A model generated the notes under the pieces. It was not told where the DNA came from. It ran no database searches and worked only from the letters and a program-made list of their open reading frames with translations. From NCBI GenBank assembly GCA_024704765.1, contig JAKMXF010000332.1:602018-666017 (forward strand): DNA of 64,000 nucleotides, given 5' to 3'. How positions within the stretch are numbered: the stretch's first letter is position 1; each line of letters starts with the position of its first letter. This stretch comes from Oopsacas minuta (taxonomy: Eukaryota; Animalia; Porifera). A program made the position numbers and the translations under genes. Shown here in pieces: positions 16,546-48,471 of this stretch.

Positions 16546-16797
16546 ATGTCTTATTTGGATTCTATCTGTTCAGCTGTTCATCATAATTCCCATGGTTGGG
16601 GTCCAAATACCTCAGACATCTCTTTTAAACATTTACATTTTGTTAATAGTTCTCCTGACTTGATTGTAACAAAGGCAGATCAATTAGGGCATACTTCTGA
16701 CTGGTCTTATGGTCTAACTCAAGACAGGAGAACAGGAAGTCAATTCAATGGCAGGTCAAAACCAAATGATCAGTTAGCTACTATGAAAGCTTTTGAA
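16546..16797 (+). CDS. EIF3D: eIF3 subunit D, coding exon 1 (84 codons)
   Basis: MSYLDSICSAVHHNSHGWGP...TKADQLGHTSDWS...QDRR matches the eIF3d N-terminus as recalled from human (IQDNPSGWGP...FSKGDRLGKVADWT...QDKR). Ends at a phase-0 donor GAA|GTAAAT. Confidence 0.85.
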
Positions 16798-19499
16798 GTA
16801 AATACCATTTTAGTATATATTTAACTATTGTGACTTCGTATGTTCCTAGCGTAGCCCTTTTCCATATTGAGAGATGCTAATAGGCAAGGAAAGAGCGTTT
16901 AGCCATTAATTCATTCAGTATTTTTTACACAACGATTTTTAAAGCGCTCATGCATGGCATTTGATACACTAAGGCATGAGTCGGAAACATTCGGCACTTT
17001 AGCCCCTCTCTACTGGCTTCCTTGTGTCTTTGTCTACATATATTTTAAGTAATTGAAAAAGTTCATATTTAGCAATTACTATGTTATTTATTAGGGCTCT
17101 CGACCTACAACCTTAGAACCGTGACCAGTTGTGTACACGTTGCTTCGTTACTCGGTAACGGGTAATGAAAGCGAAAAGGAAACTGCAACTGAAACCGAAA
17201 CGTAATAGTTCTGCCAACTGAAAAGAAATCGCTATTATTATAGTTTCGGTAGTTGTAGCCCAATTTGTAACTTTCCCATCTTAGCCATAGTGATTCCAAT
17301 TCAAACTCACTATACTATATCATAGTCAGCACACTAAAGCGAAATGTATTAGCAATATAAAACTTTACAGTACGTGATGCGACTTTTGTATAGGTTACCG
17401 ACCACTGGCTAAGGCAATGACACTCACTCAAAATTATTTGACTATGGATTGGTTAGTGTGATATTGGTAGAGTCCAGTTCATTTATTTTCCATGTTTTTT
17501 ACTCTTGTCCAAGGATATATTATTAAGTGTATAATCGCCATCCCTACGTGATGAATTTTTGTAGTTGGCCATGATGTGGATATCCACAAGAATAGTCAAA
17601 TTATGGATTTTGGATCACCTTAACATCTATAATTTAGCTAAATACCCATTTATATCTTAAAGACATATTACGCATTTATTAAGTTTGTTTCTTACGAAAA
17701 ACATACCATAACAGCTGTAATATGTGAAAAATACTATAATCCATTATATAATGGATATCGTGAAATGCTAGAGGCACATAGATATTTGAGCCTAAATATC
17801 ACTAAATCAAATAAATTTTGAATGGGATATACTATTGACGGGGCCAAGAATCAACGAACAAAAATTGGTAAATCCAATAAATCGCTCTATCTATTATTTA
17901 TTGTATTTTGGGGCCGTAGGGCACATTCTAGCAAAATCGTGTTAAAGGCCATTTACAGGTCCGATATTTGTAAAACTGGACTGACCTAGCGACGTTGAAC
18001 AAGGGTTACTCGGTGAGATAGGACACCATTTGAGATTCCAATATAAATGTCGTTTAACTGGAGATTCTGGAGTTAATATGGAGATCCACTCAAACGACTC
18101 TTTTTCCATTGATATTTGATTATTATAATACCCCCTTATGTTGTTGGTTGAGACTAAAAATTTACAAGAACTTGAATGAAGGTGGCCCAAAATTGTCCTG
18201 CTTATAGAAGCTCCCTATTTATAAATACCCCACTTATAGAAGATGCACTGTCTACATAAAACAAAGGGGGCCGGAACTTATTATGGTCAAGGTTAGCGGA
18301 AAACAATTTGAAACTCTTATTGATACTTTAATCGCTATAAATCTTATACTAGAAACCTTTGAGTTGTCCACATCAAATTTCTAGCTATTTTCATATTCAC
18401 TATTATATTAGCCCATTAGTGTTATCTGCTACTTCGTTCTTAGATGAATTATTTGCTTAATTGACGGATACACTGAGTCATTAGCCGCTAGGGCGGTACT
18501 ACTTTGGTTGAATTTTACATATTCAAATTTGAATACGCTAAAGCATTCTAAATTGAGGATTGGGGACAGGTGGGCAAATCGTGACGGCTTTGAAATGGCT
18601 TCAGAGGACCGGGAATTTCCCTCGAACAGGGCCCCACATACCTAAATCCGGCACTGTGATTAATGCTACTATTACTAACGAATTCTTCTCCAATTTAGCA
18701 AATTCTCTCTCTGAAATCACTCGAATAAAACAAATCAATGCTAAACGAAAGGATGAGTTGAAGTAATTCAAAACCCACCAGTGTATTATCGATAAATTCA
18801 TACGGAAAAATTAACAGCAATTATTTAATTATATACTAAGACATTAAAATATAAACTGCCATTCTATATTGGCCTTGTATTCGGTAAGTTGCATAGCTAT
18901 ACTATTTATTAGGCTATGCGGGGCACGAATTGCACAGATTACTGTCCAAAAGCAACGTAGAAGCTCCAGGATCAACAAAGAAGGCGATTAAATGAAATTT
19001 GGGTGACCATGGATAATTAATTGCTAATCAAGAGTGTTTACAATTTCATAATACGTATGAATTACAGTGTTTATAAAATTAAAGACAGTGAGTTGCGGGG
19101 CCTCCTAAATGTGGGGGCCCTGTTCGGCCGCACACTCCGAACACTCCTAAATCTTTTACTGATTAATCATCGAGCGATTTTGCTAGAGTGTGTAGAGCAA
19201 ATGTAATGAGTATCCCAATCCTGCGAGATTTCATGGAGCAACCTGTGACCTAAGATTTTTTATGAAACTTCAAGATATCGTATTTGAGATTCATAAGTGT
19301 CTAATATAGCGATAGCTGTATGAATGTAATTGTTGAGAGCAGATGGTGGTAAGGTCATGCCATGGTTTAGTGGTTGTATCTAGTTATTGGTTGCAGGATC
19401 CTGCTTAGCTTTCCTTCACATTCAGTACAACTTACTTATTTCAGCAAAGAATAGGAAATATATCCTGCAACACAAGTGGTAACTTCTGCGGTATCGCTC

Positions 19500-21376
19500 G
19501 ATAATAAAATATATTCATGGGCCTCAGGGCTAGCATCTGATATTAATTTTGAGATTTGTTCATCATCCAATTCATCAGAGTATGTTTGTTCTTGAGAAAA
19601 GATTTCAAGAAAATTATCAACTCGGAGCGCATAACTTCAATTTAACTAACCAGAAATCGACCACCATTCATCTGTCTATATTGAAAAAATCCCTCTCAAG
19701 AGGATCAGTTTGCAATCTGCCTGTGAGTATATACTAATATCCAGCTGATAGGAGCTCAGGGCTTAGGTCAGCGACACGATTGATTAATGTAAAGCTTTTG
19801 CTTGGAAAGTCCGATGAATTCATTAATTGCTCGAAGAAAATCTATTTTGTCATGCGATACAAGAGCGATTCCTATTCGCGATGGGTGGAAACGTTCCTTA
19901 GCATTGACTACTAGCCACCAGACATGAATAAGTTAGAGTTATGTGATGGTAATGTACTCTTCGGGGAAATACCTACGAATCGCAGAAGTGATAGATTAAG
20001 ATACATTTGGCATTTTCTTAATAAGCATTAAAGGTTAAATCAAGTGTGTGTACTCGGTGACGATGAGAACAGATAACGAACCTTGGAGGAATGTTGGAAA
20101 CTGTATCTTGTAAGTTAAAGAGAAATTGTGGAACCTGGAAAAATCTAGAAGATATAAGTTTATTTCGAATATTCTTTACTAAATGTACCGTTCGAACATT
20201 AAGAAAATATGCTGAGCAAAATTTGATGGGTTCTTGATGCAATATTATCTATTATCAAGAGGCAAATTCTTTACCAAGACCTTATATGCTTCACGTTAGT
20301 TGAATGGTTGTCTTCGATTACTCCTCGAACGTGAAAATTCCAATCGTTTAGGGGTGAAATGCAGTTCAAGATTCCAATGTAAATATCTAGGAAAGTAAGT
20401 CTTACAATAGGTAACGCTTTTATAACATAAGGGATAGTTTTCTTAAACGAAACGACCATGAATCATAATATGCTCTTGTACATGTTTAGATCACTGTCAC
20501 TTCCGATTACACTTTTCCATCGAATTGGACTTGAGTTTGAAGATATATTCATCTAGTTGTATAACGACATCATTTCCAAATAGTGATTTATATCTAAGTG
20601 TGCAGAGAGCTTTACTCCTATCGATTGTGCTTGAGTTAAGCTTCTTGAGTAAACGTTTACCAGGCAAGGGTATCAATTTGTTGAGAAGTTTGTAAGCAGA
20701 ATTAGAAGTATACCAGAGCAGGAAAGAAAATCTTAAACCACTGAATGGTAGTGTCGGCCAAGGGGATGATTTAAGGGTAACTTTATCAACTCTTTCAATA
20801 TTTCGATAGGGTAGCGTGTGATGCATTTCAACAGTAGTTTGGAAGGTTGGTGAGTAGCCTAAGGAAGTCAATTTGCTTCCAGCTACTGTGGTTATATAGT
20901 CAGGATGGGAAGAGGAGATGATTCAAAACTGAGTATTATATGCAAATCATTCGTTACATGTACACACTCTTGAACAACGGCTATTTCTGAGTCTATCTTA
21001 ACTCGATATGCAGTAACTCCAAATTCTGGAACATCAACAAGAAAGTTCCGGTATTCATCAGCTACTTTTAAATGGGAGACAACATTTTCCTTATAAACTA
21101 CTGTATATCTATCCTTGAAGAGAGACTGCTCATCTGTTTGAAAAACACGTAGTTTGGGAGATTTTCGTACTCTGATGGGAATTATAGATTGAAGGGAAAT
21201 GTAATTACTTTGGAAGTGATCGATACAAATTTTTGAACTCTCAGTTACGACAAAATTCTTACGGTTAACAAACTCAACGCACTTCGCACTTAAGGTAGCT
21301 TTTTCTGGGAATTGAAATAATGTTTTCCTGAGCAGTATCCAGTCTTGCAATCAACAACTGCACATTTAAAACCCAT
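19500..21376 (-). mobile_element. Degenerate P-element-superfamily (THAP9-like) transposase with N-terminal THAP domain
   Basis: MGFKCAVVDCKTGY from the ATG at 21376, then LFQFPE...KICIDHF (C2CH THAP), QLDE, VI.DNHSTNV, VHLVKNIRN and RLQTDPLER (Glu codon 19695-19697) followed by YRQMNGGRF. Many frameshifts; TIRs not identified. Confidence 0.85.
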
Positions 21377-21875
21377 TATGCAGTCGCGGTTTGTTGGTTA
21401 ATATCTAATATATACAGAATTTAGGAAGGATGAGATTAATTAGTGAAATAGCATGCGTCTGAGCATTATATTGTATAGGTATTGTGTTGGGAAGTAAAAT
21501 GAGTCTTTTGTTCAGTGCGATGACAGATAATACTTGGTGAGACTCTATTACGACGTTATTATATAGGAGAGTTTAATGAGTTATCATATTGGATTTATGA
21601 AACATAATCCCACATACATTCAATCACAGACTTACAATGCCTATAAAATCCCTTGTGGGGTGGGAAAGCAACTCTGAATTTCCTATGGCCTGTAAATGCC
21701 AAAATGATTACTGCCTATCGATTTGTCACTTGAGGTCGGACAACGAGAGGACACTTCTGATCAGGGGTCATCCATGCTTTGTTCTCTGCCTTTGTTAGAT
21801 GAGGATCAAAGAACACCCAACTCTACTCCTCAGTAGCCCAACACCTTAGAAGTTCGGCTATTGAGTATTTATCAA

Positions 21876-22304
21876 TCATCTTGACGATTTCTTGAGCACA
21901 TACACCCTAGAGTCCATGTTAGCCTTAGAAAGTAGGTGTGAGATCCAGACAGAGCAGACCTTTCTCAACCCTAGTACCTCAACTAAGATGCGTCTAACCG
22001 ATTCTCTACTAATCTCAGTTGCAACAGCCCGTATTCGAACTGACTGTTTGGGTTCAGCTTCAATTAATTGACGTATCTGATGAATATGGACGTCATCTGT
22101 CGAAGAACGAGGACGCCCCACTTGGGGATCGTCCTTTAACGAAAGTCTCTCCTCATTAACCCTCTGATACCATCTAACACAGTCGCTCTTGAAGGGATTC
22201 ATCGAATTTTTCTTCCAGAAGTTGATCATGTATTTCTGACCGGCTTTTACCCGCCTAAACTCGATAAATATGTAAGTCCTGAAATCTTTGTCTAAATTCA
22301 TCAA
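21876..22304 (-). mobile_element. Mariner transposase N-terminal (HTH) fragment
   Basis: LKDDPQVGRP, ISRESVRRILVEVLGLRKVCSVWISHLL (WVPHEL-like motif); catalytic domain absent. Confidence 0.75.
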
Positions 22305-22662
22305 AGCAGCAGGAGCATATTATTTATGAGCAAATATAGTGGATTACCAGAAAAGAAATGATATGAATTGTGTATAAACCGAATTAGGTACAATCTATTG
22401 CGTAGTCTTTACAGTTATGGGGGGATGACATATATACTTTGTGATTATGCTCAAGGTACACATCGAGTCTCATTACTTTTATGTCTCACCAAGTAATAGT
22501 AGAAGTAGGGAATTTAAATTCATTATTATGGTTAGGTATAAATACATGAATTGGCCTTCTATTTTGGCCTTGTATTCGGTAAGTTTCATCGTTGTATATT
22601 TTGCAGGCTATGGTGCCGAGTATTATAAAATTATTACAATTTTGATTTTTTTGTACCGTCAT

Positions 22663-22960: not shown

Positions 22961-22976
22961 AAATCGACTGTGAGGA

Positions 22977-23400: not shown

Positions 23401-23407
23401 TAACTTA

Positions 23408-24517
23408 TACGAGGATATTAACTCGGATATATGTGTGTTTTCTATTTTTGTCCTGAATTTTTAATCTATATTTCGGAAATATATTTGCTGCAAATACCCG
23501 ATATACGAGTGGCACTTGGAAAGTTTTTAGCGACATAAACGTCTTCAAGATATTGAACTCAAATTTTATATCTTCTCCAAGTATTCACCTCTAGCTTCTA
23601 TACACTTTTTCATCCTTTCATACCACTTTTCTATCATATTACACCACTGAGATTTGGTTAGGGCATCAAGGTGTTCTTTATATACGTCGACGGCTTCACT
23701 AGAAGATGAAAAACGGGAACCACGCGTAAGATCTTTGACCTTTGCAAACACAAAGAAGTCACAGGGTGCAAGGTCAGGAGGATATGGCGGATGGCCAAGC
23801 ATTTGAATGGGTTTGTCGGCAAGAAAGTCTCGGGTTGCACCGGCTGTGTGAGAGCTGACATTATTGTGATGCAAAAGTACCCCACTAAGTCCTGACTTCG
23901 GACGCTGTTCGCAGAGGTTTTTAAAGCTTCTAGAAGGCAAACTGTACTATACCATCTAGCAGTACTGTTCTTTGTTCTGGCAACAGTATAGTTGGTACAA
24001 GACCTCATTTACTAACAAAAGTGGCAACCATTTGTTTTCCAGTTGCACGTGCACGCGCAACCTTTGTTGGGGCATCCTCGCCAGGAAACACCCAAACCCA
24101 AGATTGTGTCTCTTTCTCGGCTTATATGAATATATCCAAGTCTTATCGCCTGTAACTATCTGAGAAACTCTGCTAGACCTCCCCATATCGAATTTAACTA
24201 GCATAGATTTACACCAATCAATCCTGGCTTGCTTTGGTATCAGTCAGGAGATGTGGGATCCGCCGGCTGCTCACCTTATGTAGACCAAGATCTTCATGCA
24301 ATATCTTGTTCACTGCCCATGCTGAAATCCCTAGCGTGCTGTCCAAAAATTGAAAATTTCCAAATCTTGGGAAATTCTTTATACAAGGGGCACGAAGTGT
24401 TGAGATTACTAATCAAAAACTACATAAGAGCTCTAGTATACCACAGAAGGTCGTTCAATAGAATTTCTATGCATTATGGATATGAAAAATTATAATTTTT
24501 TAAAATCTAACCTCGAA
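23408..24517 (-). mobile_element. Degenerate mariner (DD34D-type) element
   Basis: RRIPHLL, IVTGDKTW, HHNNVSSHTA and HPPYPPDLAPCD. Left end TACGAGG at 23408; weak right-end match cctcg near 24515. Confidence 0.8.
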
Positions 24518-27500: not shown

Positions 27501-28225
27501 TACTGCGGATAAAGAATACAAATCTCCACGGTTCCCCGGCGGACTTATTGACGAGGTTCTATTGTAGAGGGTGACTTTTGATTGCCTTATTGTTTTTTAG
27601 AATGACTGATTATGCATAGGCAAATACAAAAGAATTTGTCGGCACTTTTGGACCTAATCTATATCCAAGTTTCAAACAGTGAAATACACTACACAAAAAA
27701 CTTGTTTGACTTCTATCTGAATTTGTTTTTAGAGGTACAATAAATTTTCATAGAGGGTGATGAGTTTCCCAGGGGTAAAGTACCACATAGTATTATCGGG
27801 GAGTGAAATTTTCGTAGGGGAGTTTTACTATTTGACACCGTGTCATATAGTATAACTCCTCTGATGAGTGTTGGGAGGATGCAAGACTCCCCCTGGTTAT
27901 AGGTGGGTTTATTTTAAAGCGATATATATTAGCTTGCGCGGTAGTATATATATATATTTATGGAATTAATCGTTGGAGTCATAGCTATCCATGGTTAATA
28001 GAGCTAAATTAACCTGCAACTCTTTTTTTGGGCTGAACTTATAATTAATGGTTATCGAAGCAAATACAGTATTACAGGACGATAATAGAGTTCTGTTACA
28101 TTCGAATTTGCGAATAACTCCTAAACTATACAATAGATAACGTTCAAATTTTCTCTTGAACATTTTTTATATAGTACCGAATCATTCTACAAAATATTGT
28201 TCATTATAGCACCCTTATTCTTAAC

Positions 28226-29027
28226 TACGGGATGTATTCATGTCTTGAATTTTAGGACTGCGGCTAACAGGTCTTATTGTGGTATGTCATTCCATTCTCT
28301 GGTTAATCCGTTCAGTGGCGACGCCAAACCTTTATAGGGTTTAGCACAAGCCCTCTTCTCTAAATTACTCCACACAAAATAATCCAGCAGATTGAGGTCC
28401 GGGCAGGAAGATTGGCATTCCGTCTTTGACAAAACTTGATATTTTGCTCCTGAGCTTGGACTGAGTCGCATTCGAGGCATGCGCTGAAACTGAGTCCTGT
28501 TGGAATATCCATTCCTGACTTTTGAATAGGCGACGATCTGTAACTTTGACTTCCGGTTTGAGTATTAGCTTCCTGTACGTTTCTGAGTTTATTTTACTTC
28601 TTTCAGGATAAAACCAGAGTTTTCCTCCAATTATCCGTCACTCCTCTCCTAACAGATTGAGGTTTCTGGACTCGCTCAACAAATTTAATCTCTTCAGGGA
28701 TGTCTTTAGCGGTTATAGATAAAATCCACCTAGTCTCCTTGTATCGTTTTGTGGTTCGATACACCAGCATTCTATTTACTTTTTCATGTTTCAGCTTCTT
28801 CAAAATTTCAGTTAGTGTATTCCCAAACAAATAGTGAGTGATGATTTTAGACCTTGCATCTACCATGATATAAGAAAAATGTACTGGATGCTAAACAAAT
28901 CAAATGTGATTGTAGCTCGACTATAACCAGGTAAAGTTAACGAAAAAGGCTAGCAATTAGGGTTACACTGTAAACATAGTAGTTAGCGACTGTACAATCA
29001 ATGTAACAGAACTTAATTGTTACCCTG
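28226..29027 (-). mobile_element. Internally deleted Tc1/mariner element, maT/DD37D-like
   Basis: N-terminal HTH MVDARSKIITHY...RMLVYRTTKRYKET and C-terminal PDLNLLDYFVWSNLE. Terminus ...taccctg followed by TA at 29028-29029. Confidence 0.65.
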
Positions 29028-31399
29028 TACATGTCTCTATTTTGTAAAATTTCAACTAATCAGTCAGGTATTTTTCTACTTGTGATGTCACTTAATTATG
29101 ATTTTTCTCTTTAACCCTTTAATATTATATTACAATGGAGTCTCCGAATAACAGACACATTGAGGACATGGTATCTGTCCGTTGTAGAGATTTGTCCGCT
29201 CCTCGGAGACTGTTTAAGTAGTAACTACATGTTTGGCAAATTCACTTCGTGGGCCACGAGGTTTGTCCATTGTAGGGGGTTGTCTGATTCTCGGAGTGTC
29301 CGTTTTGGAGACTCTACTGTATTACCATCTCATGTTAATCACTTGAAAAATTTAAATTTTACTGTTTTAAAATTTCGCAAAATGTAATCGTTACTATACA
29401 ATTATAATTACTCCAGACCTGTATACCATTAATTTCTACATTGGATTGTCAGTTTGTGGTATATTCCACATTCACTCAATTGAAATTATTTTAGTGCAAT
29501 TATGTTGCTATTTTATAGGAATTCAACGAACATAACCAATGTATTTTAAATGTTACTGTTTATCAATTGAGTTTTCTTATTTATATAAACTTCCCTACCT
29601 GAGTAAGCTCACGCCCAAATATTCCCATTTATAAATAGTAATATTCTAGAGCTAATAATCTGCCGTAGTGTATTCACATTATACGAGATATGCATTTTGT
29701 ATTGAGAATTGTATTATAAGCATCCGAACTCATATTTTTGAAGAAGCTTTCAACTCAATTTGATATTGAATTGTTTGAGAATTATCATTCAAGCTCACTG
29801 TGAACCACTCTTTTCAATTGACACAATAGTATAATATTGGAACAAGTGGCACAAGGTAACAATGATTGATAATTATCAACTTAGGATGTAGCTATTAGTT
29901 GTTAATTGTTCTGCAATTGTCATTTCTAATATGTAAAATAGAAATCTGAAATCATAAATTGCCAAATCTCATATACATTGAATTCTTGGCTGCTAAATAT
30001 TTGACTTAGTCTAGTACTATTTTCGATGGACATTTTAGATTCTACAACACTTTTTGTCACGGAGTGTATGTAGTAAATCGTATATTGCATATTTACTCTT
30101 TATTTATCATTCATCAATACAACATGAATACATTTTCTGTCATATTATCTGTTAACAACTATGGTATCATTGGTTCAATCCTTCTGTTTCAAGATTTTCT
30201 GTGACGCAAAACATTCCTTATTGGCTAATTCAAGCTTGTGAGTTTTCAAAAGACTAGTAATTTGGAGAACATGGATTCATAAAATGTATCTGATATTATT
30301 TGTCTCCATCACCATAATCAATTTTTAAATAATTTACCAATATCAATCCATTTTATTATGACCCAATTGGACATCATATTATGAAGATAAGAAGAGAGAT
30401 TAAAAGTACTATTTATTTACGTGGTCAATATATACTGCAAATAATTTCCAAGTTCTTCAGTTCTATGAAAATTTGTAATTATTAAGATAAGGCAAATGAT
30501 TTTCTGTGCATTGACGTTGGAATTGTCTCTTGGCGTATGATATGTACACGTTGCTCTTTAGAACTGTCGAATATTCTAAATGAAATGATTCATAATATAT
30601 GCTTGAATCCTGAATCTTTTTGGATTTTAAGTCTCTATCAATTGATAGCGAGATAATTGATGAAATTCATGGGTGCGAACGGAAGTTTCACTGAATTATC
30701 TATGACATTTTGGGAAATAGTAATAGATGTAATTGACGGTGTACCAAAAGGCGTTGGAATGTCCTCTATAGAAAAACATATTCACATTCTAAGGATATTT
30801 ATGAATAAAATTCTGATGTTTACGAGATATACTACGTATAAGTGTTGTTCATTAATTAATAAGACTATATTGTATAAATCTAGAACCAAACCAACTCCTT
30901 TATGTAATCTGTGTCAAATATTTCTAAATATCCCCCTATAACTCTGTACATCGTTTCCATAGTCCTGGTACTTTTCTATCCCAGTGGCTTAGAATTCTTT
31001 GGGGTACAGATTTCCCAATTTTCATATCACTCTCCAGCCGTTTGATCTCTTTGCTCTAAGAGGTTCTTCTGAGGCGTAACTAGAGATGGCAAAGCGATGA
31101 GCCAAAATGAATAATTGCCTCACTATGATGGCGATTACATGAGGGGGATGAGGCATTGGCCAAAATTCGAGGTTGCAACTGCTTCCTTTTCCTCAATGCT
31201 TGTTACGCCCTAGCTCTTCATCTCTTCGAATAACCATCAGTCGTTGGGTGTCAGGTGTGTACTATAAGAGAGGTGCGGGAGACATTCAAGCCCAAGTCGT
31301 GAATTGCATCCATTCATTGTACTTACATGGGAGTTGCGTTTTCATGTTGGAGTAGCACTTCGCGTGGAGACTTTCCCTCCTTTCACCCTTAATAGCTTT

Positions 31400-33560: not shown

Positions 33561-34126
33561 GTTACTGAAGGTTGCTATCGATTTTTCGTAATATATTTTT
33601 CAAGTGATATTTGTGATGCCTTTAAAACCAAATTGTTCAACAACTACAATATACAAGAGAAGAGCAACGTATTGAATAACAGAAGTATTTCAAGTTGTGC
33701 TAACTGATTGATAGAAATATTTATCCGTTTGATCAAGCCTGATTTTTTTATAAATAACATGAATGTCATCAATTGATTTTTCCTTCTCTTATTGTTGGAG
33801 TTTCACCCTTCCCAGTTTGTAAACCCCGGGTTTAACTCAGGTTAATCAAACTATAGAAGTATATTTCCCCTTTATTAATCTCAATTTTAATATTATTTAA
33901 TATATATTTCTATTTGAATGAATGCCAAATCTCTTATCAAATTCCGTTTGGTTTTAAGTCAATTGTACGATTACAGATATTTCTTTATGCCGATCTTTGT
34001 TTAGACTTTGAATATTTAATGTGTTTACAATTTAATCTAATTCTACTCTGGAAATAACAGAATAAGAGTTTCTAACACAGTTTTGGTAGTTTACCCAATT
34101 ATATGAGGTTTAGCACTCTCTAATAA

Positions 34127-36416
34127 CACGACTCAACAAGATTTCTCATCAGAGATAACATATATTTATCTTAGCATACTTTTGAATGCTGAACTTGAAT
34201 CTGCAATCAGAATTTCTCTAGCACGTCTAGTTATTCTGAAATCCAATATCCATTTTTTTAATAGTATAGTATTACCTAGTTACTAAATTGCTATATGAGA
34301 ATGCCTATTTTGATTCAATTATCTGGAATATAAATGACTTTACTTATTTGAATTCAAGCAAATCAAATTATAAACGTGCATCGTAATTGTAGAACTCATC
34401 CGACAATTTCTGTTACGTTTGTGGTCTTTTTGCGTAAAATCACAAAGACGACCAATCACAAATCAATTAAAGAACATATACAAATTGTACTTCGAATGTC
34501 CACTTGGTGACCAAGACAAGTTGTGGGCACCACATGTTATATGCACTTCTTGTTCAAGTGGACTACGAGATTGGTTGTACAAAAGGAAAGTTTCAATGCC
34601 ATTTGCAATACCCATGGTCTGGAGGGAACAGAAATATCACCTGGATGATTGTTACTTTTGCCTTATCGACATTACCGGATTCTCAGCCAAGAATAAGCAC
34701 GCTCTCGTTTACCAAGACTTGGATTCTGCTCGCAGGCCAATTCCACACGACATCTCATTATCAATCCCAATTCCCAAGCCACAGCAAATTAAAATCGTGT
34801 CTGATATGGTGGAAGATGTTCATGCAGATTCTACAGATGCTAATTATGTCCCGGAAGATGAATTACTTGAGCCACAAACATTTACACAGGGAGAATTGAA
34901 TGACCTGTTCAGGGATATAGACTTATCTAAAGACAAAGCTGAACTCTTTGCATCCAGGCTCAAACAGAAAAACCTACTCGACAAGATGTCCTAGTATCCC
35001 ACTATCGCAAGCGAAATTTCGATCTCGCTCAATACTACACCACTGATGGTCCACTGTGCTATTGTAATGATATCGGAGGACTCTATGCAAACCTATTACA
35101 AGAACATTCTTCTTCTGATTGGCGCCTTTTCATCGACTCGTCAAAACGCAGTTTGAAAGCTGTTCTATTGCATAACGAAAATCTAAAGCCTGGCGTTCCA
35201 ATTGCTCACTCCGTCTATCTCAAAGAAACCTTCGTCAATTTGCAGGAAGTTTTGGAGGCAATATAGTATAGAACATATATATGGAATATCTGCGGTGATC
35301 TTAAGATAATCGGGCTATTGATGGGCTTGCAACAAGGTTTCACAAAGTATTGTTGTTTCCTATGTCTATGGGACAGCCGAGCAACTGGTGAACATTATAA
35401 AAAATGTGATTGGCCGAAGAGAACCTATGAAGTGGGGAAAACCAATTTACAGCATTCGCCATTGGTAGATCCAAACAAAGTTTTCTTACCCCCACTTGAT
35501 ATTAAACTTGGATTAATGAAAACATTCGTTAAAACAATGGGCAAAACAAATTCAGCAGGATTTCTGCATTTGGTAGGCAAATTTCCGAAACTAAGCGAGG
35601 CAAAGTTAAAAGAGGGAGTATTTGTAGGACCACAAATCAGACAAGTATTTAGAGTTCCAGATTTCGAGAAGACATTATCCGAATTAGAAATGAGTCCTTG
35701 GAAGTCTTTCAAATGGGTTTGTGAAAACTTTTTGGGCAACAAGAAGTCGTCCAACTACGGAGAAGGAGTGGAAACCTTGCTTAACGCATACGAGAAGATG
35801 AGCTTTCGCATGTCGCTAAAACTTCACTTCTTGCACTCTCACCTTGATTTTTTCCCTGAGAACCTTGGTGCTGTAAGTGATGAACAGGGTGAGAGATTCC
35901 ACCAAGACTTACAGGAGATGGAAACCCGATACCAAGGTTTCTGAAATGAGGGCATGATGTCCGATTACTGTTGGAGGCTCTTCAGAGATAATCCCAACAA
36001 GATATATAAAAGGAAGTCGTACTCTCAACACTTTTAATTTAGTTAGCTACCTTTATACTTCTAGATGGATATGTATTTCCTCTTACTTTGTGAGTAGTTG
36101 ACACATGCATGAATGTGAATAATTATATGTAAGAGCTAGGATAATAACTGATATTATCTTGGCATTAATCTAAAACATCGAAACATTGATTTATTTCAGA
36201 TGGCTATCATGTAAGAAGACAAAAAGACAGCCACTACCATAAAATAACAGGAAAAATTTAGGAAATACATAAAAATCGTTGACTTGTAGATGGAAAAATA
36301 CTGGACGTGCTGGAAAGAATCTGAAAGCAGATTTGAATTCAACTTAAAAAACTAGCTTAGAAAATGTCAATCTAATACTTGATGAGAAAATGAAGTTGAA
36401 TTTTGTTAACCTTGTG
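34127..36416 (+). mobile_element. Full-length, decayed Chapaev3-type DNA transposon, 2290 bp
   Basis: TAA|CAC ... GTG|TAA (3-bp TSD). Imperfect inverted ends of about 110 bp (caacaa, tttctcatca, agcacgtc). Transposase 34380-36037 with FCYVCG, WAPHVICTSC, DDCYFC, LFIDSS, CGDLK and SDEQGERFHQD; several stops and frameshifts. Confidence 0.88.
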
Positions 36417-36979
36417 TAACCAGAGTTTACCCAGTTTAACCTACTAAATGGGGTTTAACCCGGTTTAAACCATAGTTTAAACCAGGAAGGTGTGTTAAAC
36501 TTGCCAATCTTTCTCTTCTCTACATTTGGAACCAATGTAATACCGCTTTCTACATCACAACCAGAAACAGAAAGAAATTATTGGCTACTTTTGGGTTTAA
36601 CAGGGACCCATGGAATACTTGCACTCCACCACTTACCATCTAAGCTCTCAATTGATTTCTTACTCTTCCTGACATTAGATGAACCTTTTGACATTAGAGA
36701 GTGTACAGAATGTCTTTTATCTTCATCGAGATTTAGTAATCGCACCACTTCATCTGCTGCTCAATTCATATCATAGTCATGAACCTCCAATATAATAGCC
36801 AAGTCAAGACTTGTTTTTGGGCTTTCAGATAATATTGTTGTTTCAGCCGTTGTTAAATTGATAAGTAGAGTTACAATAGGTTATCAAGTTTATGAACTTG
36901 TATACTACCCAGTGATATACGGTAATTATTTATAATACTGCATTATATTTGTGTAAAATGACCATAAAATAACATTATA

Positions 36980-40398: not shown

Positions 40399-41999
40399 GG
40401 AAAATAGATCATTATTTATCTCAAATGTGGTTGAAAACATGGTCTATTCTAAACAAATTTAATACTACACTCACTATCATTCATGTTGCTAACAGCAAAT
40501 TTTGCTAATACTAGTTGATTCCAGTCTAACACAGTCTAGCTTTGCAGTTATGAATTATAAACATTATGGTTCCTGTGAACAGCACGATTGGAGCTGATAA
40601 TAGCCAATTTGAATTGCTGACACGAGAGATAAGCATTTAAAGTATCTTTTTTCCTTTGGCTGTTAACATCTTCCATCCCCTGTTTTGTGAATGATAAACT
40701 AAATCAATACAACGTATTACAAAGTCCAATTAACCCATAAATTTATTCATTGGAAATTTTCCAAAATAGCTACTAAGACAGTGCTTGGCAAAATCAGAAT
40801 TTGTTTGTTGCTGAGCTTAGCTAATAAAGATTTATCTGCTTGCAATTTGCCACCATCTTAATTATACTAATTTTGAAACTGAGGATATAGTCTCTATGTA
40901 GTTATAGTAGTCTGGTTCAATTTATTGAATTTTAGAGTTGTTAACACTGTTGTTCCTGTTGACTTTTCGAGATAAGGAACCAGACTATATGAGCCTTGAT
41001 GTGAATGTAAATAATTAGGTCTTAACTGTGCAACTGGGATAATTTATTTGTGACTAATACAGGTAAACCCCGAGATATGGCTTCATCGGGGGATTAAATT
41101 TGGGCTGTACCTCAGAGGTTACGCTTACACACTCTTAAATACTGTTTTAGGGCCAAAATATCAGATCTTTACAAAAATTAGTATTACTAATAGTTATTGA
41201 AAACCGATTAACCGAGGAGCAAGTATTGGCCTTGAGATTTAACGGCTGTAATCTTTATGGACCCAATGGTTAGTTGTGGGGGGCCTTTTCGGCCACACAC
41301 TCCTATTACTCCTAAATCCTGTACTGCTATGTGGGATTTATACATTATATCAGATGATTGCTGCATTTCTGAGGAAATTTTGCATGAAAATTTCCAATCC
41401 GGATTTCATTAGTTACCGTATTCTGAGATTTTCGATATCGGATCTCATAGTTTCAAGAAGACTAATAGTATAGGATAATCGATCGTTGAATTTTGATTAT
41501 CACGTATCTCATAGAGTTGCTGCATCTCAGAGGTGCAGTTTTGGAAGGTTTACCTGTAACATTTGTAGTGATGATCCCCACCTAACACAGTGGCTTTAAA
41601 TGCCTATCAGTAAACATTAAGGTCTTGGGTACCTTTAAAGTGCATAAAAATGTTATCTATCTATTGGTTATTATATATAGCTAGTTGATTGACAGCAAAG
41701 GTTTTTGGTATGGTTTCTATTTTTGAGTAATGATGACGTCAACATAATTTGTGAAACATAAACGAGCGTAAAATCTATCTAGGTTGGATTTAGGGTATAA
41801 AATCTATTATTTGCTTATGGGTTAATCATTATTTAGGGTGTATCAAAAAGATTGAGAGTTACCTGTGGTTTCTATTTTCTTGTTATGATGATGTAAGCAA
41901 AATTATACAGTTTAATTCTGGTAATATCTGTGTTATTTGACTTATTTAGAAAAGTGTTCTCACTAAATTATGTACCCAAGGGATAAAGTGTTTAGATTT

Positions 42000-42480
42000 T
42001 CAATATGCCGTTGCGGGTCCCGTTTCCATTATCTAAGTTCGCCATGATTGGGATTGCGTTGCATGAATAGCCTTGGACAGAGATCCCCACAAGGTTCGAT
42101 GTACCTTACCTTTGAGCGCTTTCGAAAACTATTTGTATTGGAAGTTGAAGAAGGAAGACAAGACGCTACTCAAATATTAACGAATTGAATAATATGTCTG
42201 TATCGTTAGTCTGGTGAAGCAAATTTGTACATTTCAGCCTGCAGGTGTGTCCGATTCCTCCACATTCCTTACACTTAAGAACATTGCAAAAACCTATCAC
42301 AACTGGACCGATAGATCATTACGTTTACTGAATGCATCATGTTCAGACTTCAATTCGTTGAATCTCCTCTGAAGTGAGGAAAGTTCGCCACTAAAAGATC
42401 AAATATCTGGATGAAGGAATCGACTGCCGTTCTGAATGATGGTTGAGAGAGAAGAAAATCAAGTGCTTCTTAGTTATTCA
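42000..42480 (-). mobile_element. Possible retrotransposon gag fragment
   Basis: Zinc-knuckle-like CKECGGIGHTCRLKC on the minus strand near 42230-42280; no other domain seen. Confidence 0.3.
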
Positions 42481-43120
42481 TTTAGAATTTGAAATTGTTG
42501 CTAGAAATTTGTTTAAATTAGTAGTACAATATGAATTGCTTAAATTCTGAAATTTTAAAAATTTACTGGTCGCTCTACTAAAAATGCTTGGTGTTCATTT
42601 CGGGGAGATTGGGGAGGCTGGATTTAGTTCTAAATTATAGATAATATTATGACAAATCACCCTAAAACTTGATATTACCTGGCCACGACTGGCCACAGTG
42701 AGTTTGAGAGGTAATTAGACCAAGGTATAATGTGTCGGACACATTATGTGACGTCAAAATTAACTGAATCATGGAGAAAATATTCAAAGTGAAATACTTA
42801 GCTCTTATCATAATTGAGAAGATTATATTCTGAACCAATAGTAGGTTAAACTTCGAGCTGTCATTCTGATGAGAATATTTAGGCACAGAGAATTATATGC
42901 CTATCTATATATATATCCAAATTAGGTGAATAATGAATTCAATGTTTGCCATCCACTATGTATGCCATCTGATTACGAAGTGATAGGAATGTTCTCAAGA
43001 AATTATGATTCCTAGATTTTAGACTATGGTGGATTTAGTTATAACATTTTCGAAAGCTTATGGGATGATGAAGAATTTCCTCTAAAGCCTATGGTCAAGC
43101 CACTGTGCCTAACCACCCGA

Positions 43121-45953
43121 CACGGGTCTCTCAGAAAATCATATTGATCGAAAAAACGAGGTCCTTGAGATTTTTCATGATTCTTGTGTAGAATTTTGCG
43201 TAGAATCCGATTCTGTTGTCAAAAAATATTTCCCACACAAATTTTTTCGATAAATTTGTTTTTTTGTAAAAAAATAATTTTTTACAATTCGAATATTTTA
43301 GATTCTCATCATGACAGCGATGGCAGATGCATCACCATTGGCAATCAGATATTATTATGATATGCTTGGACATTGTTGTTTACATCTGCATGCACTTAGA
43401 ATTTTCAATAGTATTGCGGTTTTATTCTATTCTATTATGTCATTCATTTTTCTGTATGGTATCAGGTTCGAATAGTTTAACAATAGTAACAATAGTTTGA
43501 TTGCACGTCATTAATCACCTAATCGAGTCCTTTGAATACTTTTAAGTAGTTTCCATTCAGTGATAATTAGTAATTAAAGGTGTTTAACGAATATCTGTTT
43601 GCATAGAAAAACTATTTAAAGAATGCTTGTACTCATTTTCTATATAATTTTTCTGATACATAATTGTTCTGATATCTATTTCTACTGTTGGTATTTATGA
43701 GTAAGCACGAGTCTGCAAAAGACAAAATTTGTCGTTGGTGTTGTATTAAAGTTGGGAAGATAACTATTAAAATCAACAGCCTTATTTCTACTCATTTGGG
43801 TGAGCAATATTCGAAGTTTTTCGAGCCAATCGATCCGATGGACGATAATCGGCCAAATGTTTTGTGCAATACTTGCAAGCTCTATTTGGTTAATCGATCA
43901 ATGCATGATGATACTTCAAGGGAAATTCCTGTTCGATTCAATTGGCCAATTATACGAAATACTCGCTTGAATACGTGTAGTTCAGTCAATACCTGTGTAA
44001 TGTGCATGGAAAGTTCGAGATTTGGACCTAGAAATCGTGCTTCTTTGCAAATTCTCCACGAAAAACCTGGACGTCCTGCGATCAACTCTCCCAAAAAGGT
44101 TCTTAACCTTTGTAGTAAGTGTTTAAACACAATAAGTCCCGGATTTCCGCATACTTGCTCAAAACTTCTTTGGTAAATAATAGCCAATTTTTGTTAGCAC
44201 GAAAACGTTCTATTGAACCTGTCGTATGTTCCGAAATCTTACGAAAATTCCGCAGTGCAAGTGAGGACTCGCGTATAACGTTACCTAGACCATCGGGAGG
44301 CCATCCAATTCATATGCTTCCTGGTAATTTGGACCAGTTACCTCAACACAAAATGCCCAAAATGGATTTCTCTGACATCGCACAGATAAAATGCACTGGC
44401 GGAGCAATGAGTAACAAGCAACTAAAAGCTGTAACCAAAGTAATAAGGGATGCTGGCGTGGCCTGTCCATCAATGAAGGACTATTACGACGAACGGAAAC
44501 AATATTGTGATGATATATTCGAATGCGTCCAATTAGATCTGGAATGGAGCAAAGAGAAGTATTCCTCTGATATCAGAAAGACTTGGGTCGTACGCTGTTG
44601 CAACATCGACAAACTGATAGAAAAAGTCTACAACATTAGCGGAGAATCTTCAGTTTACAGTTTCAATTTTAAGCTTGGCCTTGATTATGGTTGTGGGTTC
44701 ACTAAGCTTGTCATGTGTCTACAACTGGAAAATTCTGTGCGAAATCTAATCTTCTTATGGGTATCAAGTGCTCCTGAAAATAATTACAATTTTTCTATAA
44801 TACTGAATGCCCCGGAAATTCAAAAGTTTATTCATGAGTACAACGTATCTTTTACCTTTGATCTCAAAGCCGCTGCTCTCTGTCTGGGTATTATGCTTGG
44901 ACGTTACCCATGCATTTGGTGTGTATGGGATGCTAAAAGTGGATTGGATCATGTCGAATTCAAATCAAGATCATCAGCACATCATGCAGAGATGTACCAA
45001 AAATTGTGTGAAGAATATAACTCCGACTCAAAGAATCATGCGATTGACTGTGATGGTGTAGAAGATATGGAGGCTCTTGGTGTATGGATGGTTGACTACA
45101 TGCAGATGTTCAATATTCCCGAGTTACATCTTTTGTTAGGGGTTGGTCAGAAGTTGTACAATGCGATCGTGGCTACAATGTCTGAAGAAGAGTTAGTTAC
45201 ACATGAATTATTACTGAAGCACAATAACATATCTCGAAGTTCTTACCATGGAGGCGCATTTGAAGGTAATGCAATGCGGAAAATTACATTGATGGTTGAG
45301 CAGATTGGTTTTCCAATTAGCAACTCATCCAGCATTGCTTTAAAGCGATTTTCAGAGGTAGTGAGGACATGTTTTGGGCAAAAGATACAAGGTGATTACA
45401 AACTGGCGATATTTCAATTTGAAGAAGCATTCAAATTAACTGGGCTGAATTGTTCAACAAAAGTTCATATAGTGTGCAGACATGTTATCCCATTTATCAC
45501 CAAATTCCTTCCAGTTGGTATGGGATTGGGCGCCGTTTCAGAGCAGGCAGCTGAATCAGCTCATTCTCGATTCATCAAAGTTTGGAGAAATTATCAATGT
45601 AGCGAGTCTCTAGAAAATTACGGCGAAAACCTACTAAATGCTGTCAAGGAAATTAGTTTCGTTAATTTTATAAGTACTTAATATATTCTATATGTGACTG
45701 ATGGGTGTATTATATTCAATGTATGAGTGATAACGATGATTCTAATCTGATAAATTAGCAACCCGACAACATATAAAAATGGGAACTAAAAAAATTTCTT
45801 TTTTACAAAAAAATATAAAATAACTCAAAAATTTGTGTGAGAAATATTTTTTTGGCAACAGAATCGGATTCTACGCAAAATTCTACACAAGAATCATGAA
45901 AAATCTCAAGGACCTCGTTTTTTCGATCAATATCATTTTCTGAGAGACCCGTG
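43121..45953 (+). mobile_element. Chapaev DNA transposon, 2833 bp, young
   Basis: TIRs begin CACGGGTCTCTCAGAAAAT and are near-identical for about 115 bp (looser to about 165 bp). Perfect 4-bp TSD CCGA (43117-43120, 45954-45957). Confidence 0.92.
43697..45681 (+). pseudogene. Chapaev transposase, about 661 aa once one missing A in the run at 44161-44164 is restored
   Basis: Chapa-type N-terminus H-x7-CRWC...D...P...CNTC...W...C..C, second finger CSKC...H.C. Core motifs LGLDYG, FDLK, CIWC, PELH and SEQAAESAHS. No internal stops in either ORF. Confidence 0.85.
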
Positions 45954-48174
45954 CCGAGTAGTCGAGCACTAGACCAAGACCAGAGGAGTCTAAGCGCTGG
46001 TGAACATATGCCCATAAAAGTATTCAAATAATAAATGAGCGGCCAAGGTATACATATTTCTGTAATTTGCCATGAATTGTAATTATAGACAATTTAATTG
46101 ACAATTTAATCCCGTAAAAATTATAATACTTGGTTAAATCTCGTGATTTAACTATTCATTTTGAAATTATAGTAAAATATTTTACAAAACAGACAATACT
46201 ATTCTTTAGAAAAAACATGTGGAAAGTTTTACAAGAAATATTTGGCCACTGGAATCAATTTCATAAAATCGTCTGTAAAGATCATTAAAAGGGTTGATAT
46301 TTACATAACTAGGCTCAGTCGCCTAACGGCATCCAACAAGGTGTCACTCTCTTAAGTTATGAGAATTTTGAGAATGAAATGTTGCCACTTTCCTGTCACA
46401 TTCCTGAGACATTCCCTCGTTTTTTTGTAAAAGTATTCATATTATATTCAAGTGCATTCAAACGACGAGAAATTTATCACTGATATATATCAACCTATAA
46501 TTCCTTTCGATTTGAACTTAATGAGTTTTATGTATTTTAAATCATCCAAATTTGTCTAACGGTGGCACATTTACATCTACAGGAGAGTAATTATAATTCG
46601 CTCTTATCGCAATTTCTTCTTTGTCAGACCCGATTTCTACTAGAGTAGAAAACAGTTGATTGATATATATTGGAAAATACAGGTGAGGCGCTTAATGATA
46701 GACACACAAAAAACCTATCATAGATGGATATTTGGAAGATAAACACTGTGTAAATAAGGAGTTATAGATGATAGCTGTACGCAGTGGCGAACACTAGGGG
46801 CGCTCAAGCACCCACAATAGATTCAAAGAAATAGTGTATTCATTACAGAAGGTGATAGATTGGACAAATTAAATAAGGGTTTAAACGATAAATAAAAGTA
46901 TGTATTGGGATCAACCGATCAAGTTATTTAATTCCTATACTAAGTTCCTGATAGTTATCCAATAAATAAAATACATTGTTCCCATAGAAATTCCATGTTA
47001 ATTAATACGGATTATCCGCTTTTTGAAATGTAACCATCGATCCAAAACAGCATCTAATGACACAGAATTCATTATATCCCGATTCATTGATAGTACCACT
47101 AGATCACTTGCTCTGGTATAATCAAGGCAGTTTCGATCCCAAGACAATTCCTATTCATTGTGCTGAAACTCCGTTCTACAGTAGCACTACTTACTGGTAA
47201 AGCTTTAGAAATGGAGATTAACAAGTTTAGATTTTTAAGAGTTCTAGGTCAAGGGCACTAGTGGCTTGAATTTAATAACAATACGGGCCCTTGTAGTTCA
47301 CTTCTCAAGAAATCGAGGTAAATCTCAAAGCAGCAGTCGTATCGTGAAACCAGGGGTAATAACCTGTTGAAATCCAAATAACACGATAAATACTACAATA
47401 TCAAACCAGGGTAATTTGGTCAGAGCGCTCCAATAATTAGCAAAGTATGTGCCACTACTGTACGGTATATATATATTCTCAACTTCATGGACAAGTTTAT
47501 CTCGTTATAGAGACCAAATGGGTCCACTGTCTGCATTAACCAGGTGTCCTCTTTAACTAGTTCTCTTGATTGGAATCTAATAGGACTCCTTTTAAGTGTC
47601 CGCTATTCGTTAGTGACTCATATCTTATAGAGTGAGCCGGGCCGCCACCGCAAGGACGGATTCAATTCAGAATTCACTCCTTCACTTCCCATTCCGAAGT
47701 AGAATTTTCGGACTGAATTCTCATTATCAGCCTTTTAATCACAGAAATCAAGGGCCTAATTCCCATTCCCATTCTTAGCCCTCTAAATACACAAATCAAG
47801 GGCTTAATTCCCATTCCCTTTCTTAATGGAATTATGGCTTGAAACACAAATCCCAATTCCATTCATAAATTGAACATTTTCCTGTACTTATACATAGGTG
47901 GTCGATAAGCGAGTTTAAGCGTTTTGTCTAAACACTAAAATATTATTATTTATACTTCATATCATTGAATTTATATTTCAATCTTTTTGATGGTGGCAGC
48001 AATGCTTTTTCCTCTAGAATGGGATAAATAATATTATATGCAACTATGGAGTGATAATAATATACAATTCTCCACACAGTTTGTGGAAGGCCTTGTATTC
48101 TACGATCCATCGATTTGTATTATAGTAATTTATGTGAAGCATATTTTTGGTATATAATATTCTTAATTTTATAG

Positions 48175-48471
48175 GAAGGTCCTCTTTTTCATTACGTGCA
48201 AGCTCCACGTAACAAACGGATCCCTGGGATTCAACGTAGCTTAAAACACAAACTACAGCAACAAAAGGTTATTCAAATGCAAAAGCAACAGCGTGAGGAG
48301 AAGATGCAAGCCAGCACATCACAGAATATAAGGCAAAGAAAACTTAGAGAAAGGGAATTTCAGAAAGCCGAGAAAAAATGGTTCAAGAAAAATGGAGGTC
48401 GTTACCAACAGCAAAAGCATATTAGCATGCGGAAAATTGCTCCCAGCGTTGAAATCAAGCACACATGGCAG
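48175..48471 (+). CDS. EIF3D: eIF3 subunit D, coding exon 2 (99 codons)
   Basis: AG|GAA...CAG|GTATTA. EGPLFHYV, KLREREFQKAEKKWFKKNG and PSVEIKHTWQ match human ESSFQLV, KERERIRLQKKFQKQFG and SSVEVRSDWE as recalled. Confidence 0.85.

Follow-up and report, generated by a model that had tools for sequence, protein, structure and literature searches.

An eIF3d gene with giant transposon-filled introns in the compact genome of the glass sponge Oopsacas minuta

Introduction

Enriched repeats and increased intron size are hallmarks of heterochromatic genes (PMC4981424), and the Y-linked loci of Drosophila are treated in PMC2386818. In the pericentromeric heterochromatin of Drosophila and in its Y fertility genes, active and needed genes lie in repeat-rich, gene-poor DNA, and transposons have lengthened their introns beyond those of orthologues located elsewhere. 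Glass sponges are known to combine long introns with genomes that are compact in other respects (PMC10282587), and spliced-leader (SL) trans-splicing has been described for them with an acceptor AG located shortly upstream of the ATG and multicopy SL-like genes with a GTAAGT donor (PMC10282587). The genome of O. minuta comprises 61.46 Mb in 365 contigs with a mean intron of 341 bp (PMC10280926, PMC10282587), and the mean intergenic distance is 2 kb (PMC10280926).

We analysed a window of 64,000 nucleotides of O. minuta DNA (the whole stretch presented above), in which two short open reading frames 31 kb apart had been predicted to be the first exons of a split eIF3d gene. Here we describe the complete coding sequence, its introns and its counterparts in related genomes.

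Gene structure and identity

eIF3d, also named eIF-3 zeta (Pfam PF05091), is the cap-binding subunit of animal eIF3. Its coding sequence in O. minuta spans 88,096 bp of contig C332 and consists of five exons on one strand, with exons 3 to 5 located downstream of the window on the same strand as exons 1 and 2. Within the window, the gene is arranged as follows.

16546–16797, forward strand: eIF3d exon 1, with the ATG at 16546; 84 codons; phase 0; donor GTAAAT at 16798
16798–48174, forward strand: eIF3d intron 1 of 31,377 bp, GT..AG, with a T-rich tract and the AG ending at 48174
48175–48471, forward strand: eIF3d exon 2; 99 codons; phase 0; donor GTATTA at 48472
48472–64000, forward strand: the first 15.5 kb of eIF3d intron 2 (18,223 bp)

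Exon 3 starts 2,695 bp beyond the end of the window. All five exons have the form AG/exon/GT in phase 0 with open reading frames, and their summed length is 546 codons. Introns 1 to 4 measure 31,377, 18,223, 28,552 and 8,303 bp, respectively, and none contains a single N; these transposon-filled introns are about 90 times as long as the mean intron of the genome. The donors GTAAAT, GTATTA, GTTAAT and GTTTAC are all distant from GTAAGT. The observation of a split eIF3d gene was confirmed, including the positions of the two reading frames, their GT and AG sites, their phase 0 and their combined length (84 + 99 = 183 codons), and intron 1 indeed occupies about half of the window (49%). The interpretation attached to this observation was partly supported as a whole. 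Beyond the original prediction, all four introns of the gene are giant, within a span of 88 kb, and the 5' end of its mRNA is a trans-spliced leader.

All homology searches were run per exon, with each exon as a separate query. Against PF05091 (cut-off 25.2 bits), exon 1 matched profile positions 5–56 (21.4 bits, E 1.4e-4), exon 2 positions 98–172 (12 bits, E 0.1), exon 3 positions 173–248 (61 bits), exon 4 positions 247–332 (110.8 bits) and exon 5 positions 331–532 (228.8 bits). Exons 1 and 2 taken singly score under the cut-off and exons 3, 4 and 5 over it, and the five exons cover the full length of the profile in order. The N-terminal motifs of eIF3d that had been read from the two frames (GWGP, QLG..SDW, RERE..KK and SVEIKHTW) are all present, and BLASTP against the N-terminus of the full-length eIF3d of a relative matched exon 1 with an E value of 3e-14 and exon 2 with one of 2e-28. 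The match to eIF3d thus greatly exceeds anything that chance would give. Compared by sequence only, exon 5 matched the solved eIF3d chains 9cpa_D, 6yam_m and 5k4b_A with E values of 5e-53 to 4e-44. Exon 5 is approximately 45–50% identical to the eIF3d of bilaterians, and the solved human-type chains have 548 residues compared with 546 codons in O. minuta. The N-terminal ~180 residues, in contrast, are divergent from known eIF3d, and the exon–intron architecture is extreme by the standards of this genome. A Pfam profile search of the genome contigs revealed one eIF3d locus, and exons 1 and 2 are each unique in the genome. Another eIF3 subunit, eIF3c, was found on contig C110.

Transposon content of intron 1

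Intron 1 contains no less than 53% repeated DNA, distributed over 12 or more segments, and some of these are 97–99% identical to other copies. The number of segments agrees with the earlier estimate of at least ten transposons or relics. The following segments were characterized.

19162–21532, reverse strand: old repeat with a THAP-domain ORF relic; 77–79% identical to other copies
21538–22504, reverse strand: repeat with an HTH_32 transposase N-terminal relic; at least 15 copies, 85–93%
23498–24340, reverse strand: repeat with a DDE_3 transposase relic; at least 12 copies, 81–91%
28070–29050, unstranded: ~1-kb repeat; at least 10 copies, 84–91%; ~350 bp of the other copies are absent here
31938–33789, unstranded: 1.85-kb repeat; at least 30 copies, 78–92%
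34122–36419, forward strand: 2.3-kb element; at least 39 scored copies, 94–97%; 1,679 first-look candidates
41585–43108, unstranded: repeat; at least 15 copies, 76–92%
43121–45953, forward strand: young element of 2.83 kb, bounded by terminal inverted repeats; 14 or more full copies, 97–99%

The two ORFs of the 2.3-kb element have no Pfam match. The 2.83-kb element has inverted ends of ~165 bp and an ORF of 520 amino acids, whose Atlas features resemble those of RAG1 RNase-H-type transposases; we regard this as a lead only. Pfam scans of the long intronic ORFs revealed transposase and integrase relics and family-less ORFs, and no nested host genes. The eIF3d introns come from the same clade as the large glass-sponge introns with nested host genes of Aphrocallistes vastus and O. 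minuta, but differ from these in that no host gene is recognisable among their long ORFs.

In flies and vertebrates, very long introns are known to undergo recursive splicing, and the length of intron 1 alone would speak for its stepwise removal, which had been proposed as an alternative to very long-range splicing. However, the sense strand of intron 1 contains no AG/GTRAGT site (1.0 ± 1.0 in shuffled sequences), so that a consensus ratchet site is absent where chance alone would supply about one. In all four introns, moreover, no pyrimidine tract is followed by such a site. Many animals splice introns this long in a single step. A requirement for stepwise removal was thus not upheld, and we consider its use here unlikely.

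Comparison with related genomes

An intron-free contig of 2,320 nt from a relative encodes an eIF3d of 559 amino acids, to which all five exons align in order. Exon 1 aligns from residue 1 and exon 2 to residues 92–187, and exons 2, 3, 4 and 5 abut to the base on this contig. Searches of related genomes with exons 1 and 2 (tblastn) matched both exons along their whole length, with E values between 1e-25 and 2e-48, and in four related genomes the borders of every exon found are kept. Exon 1 has 83–84 codons in these genomes, and is 51–55% identical to them and 39% to the product of the relative's mRNA. In four related genomes, exon 2 shows 67–82% identity across its entire 99 codons and is each time preceded by AG and followed by GT. 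Between two relatives, dN/dS is 0.26 for exon 1 and 0.012 for exon 2; both exons are under purifying selection.

The length of intron 1, which the original prediction had proposed to compare among relatives, is 31,377 bp in O. minuta, 2,101 bp in ERZ25072740 and 46,356 or 47,283 bp in ERZ25072730, the latter two being versions on separate haplotype contigs of one related genome. Intron 3 likewise measures 28,552 bp in O. minuta versus 971 bp in a relative, and in another relative exons 2 and 5 are ~85 kb apart. Donor, T-rich tract and acceptor of intron 1 are normal in every species examined, and its DNA shows no conservation between species beyond similarity of transposon families. Upstream synteny is not conserved in the 112 kb read, with CHGN and UQ_con in relatives versus PIP5K in O. 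minuta. Word searches with exon 1 or exon 2, the scope of which is short lengths, brought up nothing but ORF calls of single exons in related assemblies, and these gave the intron lengths.

These comparisons bear on the possibility that the 31-kb distance is an assembly artefact and that exons 1 and 2 lie closer together or on different molecules. Near-identical repeats can mislead assemblers, and intron 1 holds both the 2.83-kb element, which has 14 or more other copies at 97–99% identity, and the 2.3-kb element, which has very many copies at 95–96%; in addition, our check of DNA-contig continuity covered ~2 kb around exon 1. Nevertheless, intron 1 is free of N, and the two exons are each unique and in the correct order and strand, which makes a chance misjoin unlikely. 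The same arrangement recurs in the related genome with an intron of 46–47 kb on both haplotype contigs, and the ~85 kb from exon 2 to exon 5 in another relative point the same way. An artefact is consequently very improbable.

RNA evidence and the spliced leader

A search of sequencing runs with exon 1 listed no run registered as RNA. Run X4, the kind of which is unspecified on its record, behaves as RNA over exon 1. Its summed word depth is 7,239–17,106 inside the exon compared with 5 upstream and 17 downstream, a difference of several hundred-fold over the flanks, contig word depth being a poor measure of expression level. The edges of the X4 coverage are at 16537, the spliced-leader acceptor, and at ~16797, the predicted donor. 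Among the X4 contigs listed for exon 1, none joined it to exon 2. The DNA runs X1–X3, by contrast, are flat and contiguous across the exon 1 border. The 5' end of the transcript adds one feature.

16537–16545, forward strand: spliced-leader acceptor AG (16537–16538) and 5' UTR of 7 nt, from an X4 contig

The X4 contig that aligns from 16537 is preceded by nine foreign letters (AAAACTTAC). Together with the AG, AAAACTTAC forms the 3' end of repeated SL-RNA-like genes, present as three conserved loci on contig C10, and GTAAGT directly follows all three. SL trans-splicing is recognised by a leader of foreign sequence at a 3' splice site and by separate genes that encode the leader and carry a donor; both are found here, with identification of the leader on exon 1 resting on 11 nt. 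The leader 13-mer is not enriched genome-wide (13 versus 11 in the control); the shared SL-like gene was revealed by alignment of the loci and not by this count. In the relatives, too, an AG immediately precedes the ATG of eIF3d. The AG close to the start codon and the multicopy SL-like genes with a GTAAGT donor are shared with the SL trans-splicing described for glass sponges (PMC10282587). In eIF3d it concerns the 5' end of the mRNA only and does not account for the removal of the giant introns.

Given an active SL system in O. minuta and a leader on exon 1, exons 1 and 2 might be thought to derive from separate transcripts joined by trans-splicing between two pre-mRNAs, which would make transcription of the 31 kb unnecessary. 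This is highly improbable, as the same intron is only 2.1 kb in one relative, the size of an ordinary cis-intron, and the donor, T-rich tract and acceptor of this intron are normal in all species examined. A low-depth contig (16769–17171) also crosses the exon 1 donor into intron 1, as expected of unspliced pre-mRNA, and there is no sign of a promoter upstream of exon 2. That the pieces are a decaying pseudogene or parts of two different copies is hardly credible despite the divergence of exon 1 (39% identity to the relative's mRNA product, under the Pfam cut-off), because the five exons are open, cover the Pfam profile completely and in order, belong to a single-copy gene with dN/dS of 0.01–0.26, and include an exon 1 strongly represented in the RNA-like run X4, while the genome holds no alternative eIF3d to do the job. 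Our results support a real, single-copy and expressed eIF3d gene.

Discussion

We consider it about 90% probable that this locus is a single functional eIF3d gene with giant transposon-filled introns, a spliced leader at its 5' end and normal cis-splicing. Its pre-mRNA would be transcribed over at least 88 kb, and the leader trans-spliced to the acceptor 8 nt upstream of the start codon. The four phase-0 GT..AG introns (31.4, 18.2, 28.6 and 8.3 kb) would be taken out by normal cis-splicing to give an mRNA of 546 codons. For O. minuta itself, we infer that exons 1 and 2 are joined in cis, with transcription through all of the intron and no special splicing aid. The introns are probably old in position, and their length would result from lineage-specific and still ongoing gain of mostly DNA transposons, because the gene sits on an island of transposons that has few genes and measures at least 150 kb.

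The surroundings of the gene include two features within the window.

4527–6275, forward strand: single-exon PIP5K gene, the upstream neighbour, in the public annotation
7494–12257, forward strand: hAT-type transposon between PIP5K and eIF3d, with inverted ends of 188 nt

Between 582 and 727 kb of contig C332, PIP5K, eIF3d and Rogdi are the only host genes that could be recognised, and the remaining DNA contains MULE, hAT-like, Tc3, mariner, rve, THAP and DDE_3 relics. Gene-poor, transposon-rich surroundings and introns enlarged relative to orthologous introns elsewhere, both expected of a repeat-rich (heterochromatin-like) domain, thus occur together at this locus. The likeness to Drosophila drawn here is one of sequence. 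The intron filling of eIF3d differs in consisting mostly of DNA transposons. In further contrast to Drosophila, eIF3d lies in a very compact host genome of 61 Mb with a mean intron of 341 bp, and several glass-sponge lineages have a bloated eIF3d, its contents being unrelated between them. What the case offers is a striking instance of an already known phenomenon, not a new mechanism.

The gene appears to have escaped full-length annotation. Our protein collection, which includes the NCBI annotation of the genome, holds no O. minuta eIF3d model of at least 307 amino acids, and none of five guessable single-exon models was found in it by exact look-up. A search with the relative's 559-aa eIF3d likewise revealed no full-length eIF3d of O. 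minuta or another glass sponge, the next matches being bilaterian proteins with 40–42% identity. These absences fit the expectation that gene predictors fragment or miss the locus. The present model supplies a core translation factor gene for which no full-length model was found among the public O. minuta proteins.

The same intron measuring 2 kb, 31 kb or 47 kb depending on the species is a clean natural series. It is suited to studying the splicing and tolerance of very long transposon-rich introns, here in a genome with a mean intron of 341 bp, and why transposons pile up in particular housekeeping genes. Since the eIF3d introns are transposon-bloated with unrelated contents in five glass-sponge genomes, they might be more than passive junk, namely tolerated and preferred landing pads for transposons in strongly transcribed essential genes of these compact genomes. 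We regard this as improbable; if true, constant sense transcription might feed small-RNA surveillance in the manner of a genic piRNA cluster. In its practical version, genes in such islands would be systematically missed by annotation. The genome paper of O. minuta argues for the loss of metazoan core genes. As genes in transposon islands can escape prediction, claims of gene loss there need an exon-by-exon re-check, and artefacts could account for some of the 'missing core genes' reported in O. minuta.

Structure of the eIF3d gene

The original prediction described an eIF3d gene split by a 31-kb, transposon-filled intron. Its two open reading frame pieces with phase-compatible GT and AG sites were found as described, both in phase 0, and the motifs that it had assigned to the eIF3d N-terminus are present in them, as exons 1 and 2. 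The Pfam eIF3d model PF05091 matches these exons weakly and collinearly, at positions 5-56 (E 1.4e-4) and 98-172 (E 0.1). A whole-genome profile search gave three further matches to PF05091, all on the same contig (C332) and strand beyond the window, and no match outside these three loci. They represent exons 3, 4 and 5, covering model positions 173-248, 247-332 and 331-532 (E 2e-15, 2e-30 and 3e-66). All eIF3d searches were run per exon, not on a joined model.

Exons of eIF3d in O. minuta (L001-L003, loci on C332)
Exon 1: 16546-16797, + strand; ATG start, 84 codons, phase 0, followed by GTAAAT
Exon 2: 48175-48471, + strand; 99 codons, phase 0, followed by GTATTA; preceded by a T-rich tract and an AG ending at 48174
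Exon 3: L003:1501-1728, same strand as exons 1 and 2; 76 codons, phase 0, AG/GT-bounded
Exon 4: L002:1504-1728, same strand; 75 codons, phase 0, AG/GT-bounded
Exon 5: L001:1501-2136 plus stop, same strand; 212 codons, phase 0, preceded by AG

Summed exon by exon, eIF3d has 546 codons in a CDS span of 88,096 bp, with introns of 31,377, 18,223, 28,552 and 8,303 bp, all free of N. Exon 5 also matched solved human-type eIF3d chains at 5e-53. A genome-wide check for copies found exons 1 and 2 once each and a single set of PF05091 loci.

The assembly of the glass sponge O. minuta comprises 61,460,524 bases in 365 contigs. Published figures for it are 1.59 introns per gene, introns averaging 341 bp (194 bp on one scaffold), ~2 kb between genes, and interspersed repeats at 34%, among which DNA transposons account for 15.4% of the genome (PMC10280926, PMC10282587). 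Other genes are compact: eIF3c lies inside a single 871-aa open frame, and Rpb1-type genes have long open frames or show gaps of just 27-45 bp from one matched piece to the next. Against this background, intron 1 of eIF3d has ~90 times the length of an average intron.

Transcript evidence and a putative spliced leader

Among public sequencing runs containing exon 1, none is recorded as RNA. Four such runs from one sample (X1-X4) were compared over 15000-18000. X1-X3 showed even depth, with one contig from ~15844 past 18000 unbroken over the exon 1-intron border, and are DNA runs. At 17214, in intron 1, X1 and X2 carry T, and the assembly and X3 carry C, a variant or an assembly difference. X4 behaves as RNA: its summed word depth, which is not an expression level, was 7,239, 17,106 and 11,430 in bins over 16515-16817 versus 5 upstream and 17 downstream, and it also has Illumina adapter loose ends. 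The RNA signal over exon 1 is thus strong, and its edges fall at ~16537 and ~16797.

An X4 contig aligned from 16537 is preceded by nine foreign letters (AAAACTTAC). Followed by AG, these letters end a conserved sequence at three loci on another contig, C10, each continuing with GTAAGT.

Spliced-leader-like loci
L020:1440-1580, L021:1440-1580 and L022 (minus strand), in the O. minuta genome (G000:C10) near 47.3, 77.4 and 92.2 kb; near-identical

All three end in ...CTTCATAAAAAACTTACAG, then GTAAGTTGG, and their last 11 letters are those joined to eIF3d exon 1 in RNA. By sequence they resemble spliced-leader RNA genes; spliced-leader trans-splicing has been reported in glass sponges (PMC10282587). 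Together, the leader letters on exon 1 and these loci thus indicate that the eIF3d mRNA starts with a leader whose junction lies 8 nt ahead of the ATG.

Conservation of exon borders in related glass sponges

Exon 5 as query in an exhaustive profile search retrieved P0002, a protein of 559 aa that is 62% identical. Its coding contig from a public run, 2,320 nt with one unbroken open reading frame, is a relative's mRNA. Exon 1 aligns from residue 1 (3e-14) and exon 2 on residues 92-187 (2e-28); because the linker between them differs by only ~7 residues, there is no missing exon at this point. Exons 2 to 5 meet to the base on the contig, at 963|964, 1194|1195 and 1437|1438.

Genomic exon positions in relatives were taken from single-exon ORF calls of four ENA assemblies. 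In ERZ25072740, exons 1-4 lie inside 12 kb, separated by introns of 2,101, 7,843 and 971 bp; intron 4, longer than 10 kb, contains hAT and integrase genes. Intron 1 measures 46,356 bp in ERZ25072730, where a second haplotype contig has it at 47,283 bp. Exons 2 and 5 are ~85 kb apart in ERZ20067936, and in ERZ25069837 neither exon 1 nor exon 3 was detected within 10 kb of exon 2. Each eIF3d exon found in relatives keeps the AG before and the GT after it. Exons 1-4 have the O. minuta lengths, except exon 1 of ERZ25072730 (83 codons), and exon 5 aligns over 209 of 212 codons. No conservation of intron DNA between species was found across the relatives compared. This combination of kept borders and unconserved intron DNA means that the intron sits at an old position and that each lineage gained its length on its own.

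Between O. minuta and ERZ25072740, synonymous sites are saturated and non-synonymous differences amount to 9-32%; dN/dS between two relatives was 0.26 for exon 1 and 0.012 for exon 2. Evolution is much faster in exon 1 than in exon 2 (51-55% versus 81-82% identity to O. minuta at the amino-acid level). The far N-terminus of glass-sponge eIF3d is only loosely constrained, except for the GWGP and QLG..DW motifs.

The haplotype contigs of ERZ25072730 (L014 versus L015, L012 versus L013) differ by ~0.9 kb in intron 1; upstream of exon 1, one haplotype carries an RVT_1 relic and the other a FLYWCH-MULE gene. These differences are transposon insertion polymorphism at the eIF3d locus. A further run from a different organism in another study (X5) contained 19% of sampled exon 1 31-mers, suggesting that this organism is related to O. 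minuta far more closely than the four ENA assemblies are (DNA roughly 95% identical).

Transposons in intron 1 and its surroundings

Searching the genome with intron pieces revealed at least 12 repeated segments over at least 16.7 kb (53%) of intron 1; counts and coverage are lower bounds, as ~40 candidates were scored per search. The predicted minimum of ten transposons or relics is thereby borne out. Some repeats are old relics at 69-79% identity, and Pfam matches comprise THAP, HTH_32 and DDE_3 relics. No host genes nested in the four introns were recognised among long ORFs.

Features in and near intron 1
4527-6275: PIP5K gene, single exon, 582 aa; no other host gene lies between eIF3d and the transposon block upstream
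34122-36419: 2.3-kb repeat; at least 39 scored copies at 94-97%, 1,679 first-look candidates
43121-45953: youngest element, 2.83 kb; ~165-bp inverted ends, 520-aa ORF, at least 14 full copies at 97-99%

The ORFs of the 2.3-kb repeat (191 and 208 aa) matched no Pfam family; it may rank with the genome's most abundant elements. Given its copies, the youngest element has been mobile recently or still is, and intron 1 is still growing. Atlas features of this element resemble RAG1 RNase-H-type (Transib-like) transposases; it had originally been labelled Chapaev. Its inverted-repeat arms in the window (43088-43226 and 45848-45986) extend 33 nt past the ends set by other copies.

Across 582-727 kb of C332, MULE, hAT-like, Tc3 and mariner relics are present, and PIP5K and Rogdi are the only host genes recognised besides eIF3d. 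The surroundings are a transposon island in a genome that has, on average, about one gene every 4 kb. Local synteny is broken: upstream of eIF3d, two relatives carry a CHGN glycosyltransferase and a UQ_con (E2) gene in place of PIP5K.

Splicing of the giant introns

The simplest reading, which fits all data, is that one long transcript would cross eIF3d, a spliced leader would be added at its 5' end, and four conventional introns would be removed in cis, with the exon 1-exon 2 junction as predicted. The suggested need for recursive splicing finds no support in the sequence: the sense strand of intron 1 has no AG|GTRAGT site, with ~1 expected by chance. Separate transcription of the exon 1 and exon 2 halves followed by trans-splicing is unlikely, given that one relative has this intron at an ordinary 2.1 kb and that a low-depth contig continues through the exon 1 donor into intron 1. 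It is also improbable that misassembly created the 31-kb spacing, as both exons are unique and in correct order, and independent contigs of relatives show equal or larger spacing. The frames are intact, and the gene is expressed, under selection and single-copy, all of which contradicts a pseudogene.

Annotation and significance

The window's PIP5K protein is present in the protein collection (sources NCBI, UniRef and NCBI nr), so the public annotation of the O. minuta genome is covered there. Queried with the relative's full-length protein, this collection held no O. minuta eIF3d of at least 307 aa, and five simple single-exon eIF3d models were likewise absent. These absences fit the expectation that gene predictors miss or fragment the locus. 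The portions of the O. minuta genome paper's supplements covered here do not mention eIF3d.

Active genes with transposon-swollen introns are a familiar phenomenon; Drosophila examples include heterochromatic (PMC4981424) and Y-linked genes (PMC2386818). What distinguishes eIF3d is that giant introns occur despite a 61-Mb genome, that the swollen gene is essential and single-copy, and that the bloating recurs in several glass sponges with unrelated contents. The practical consequence of this locus concerns annotation and claims of gene loss.
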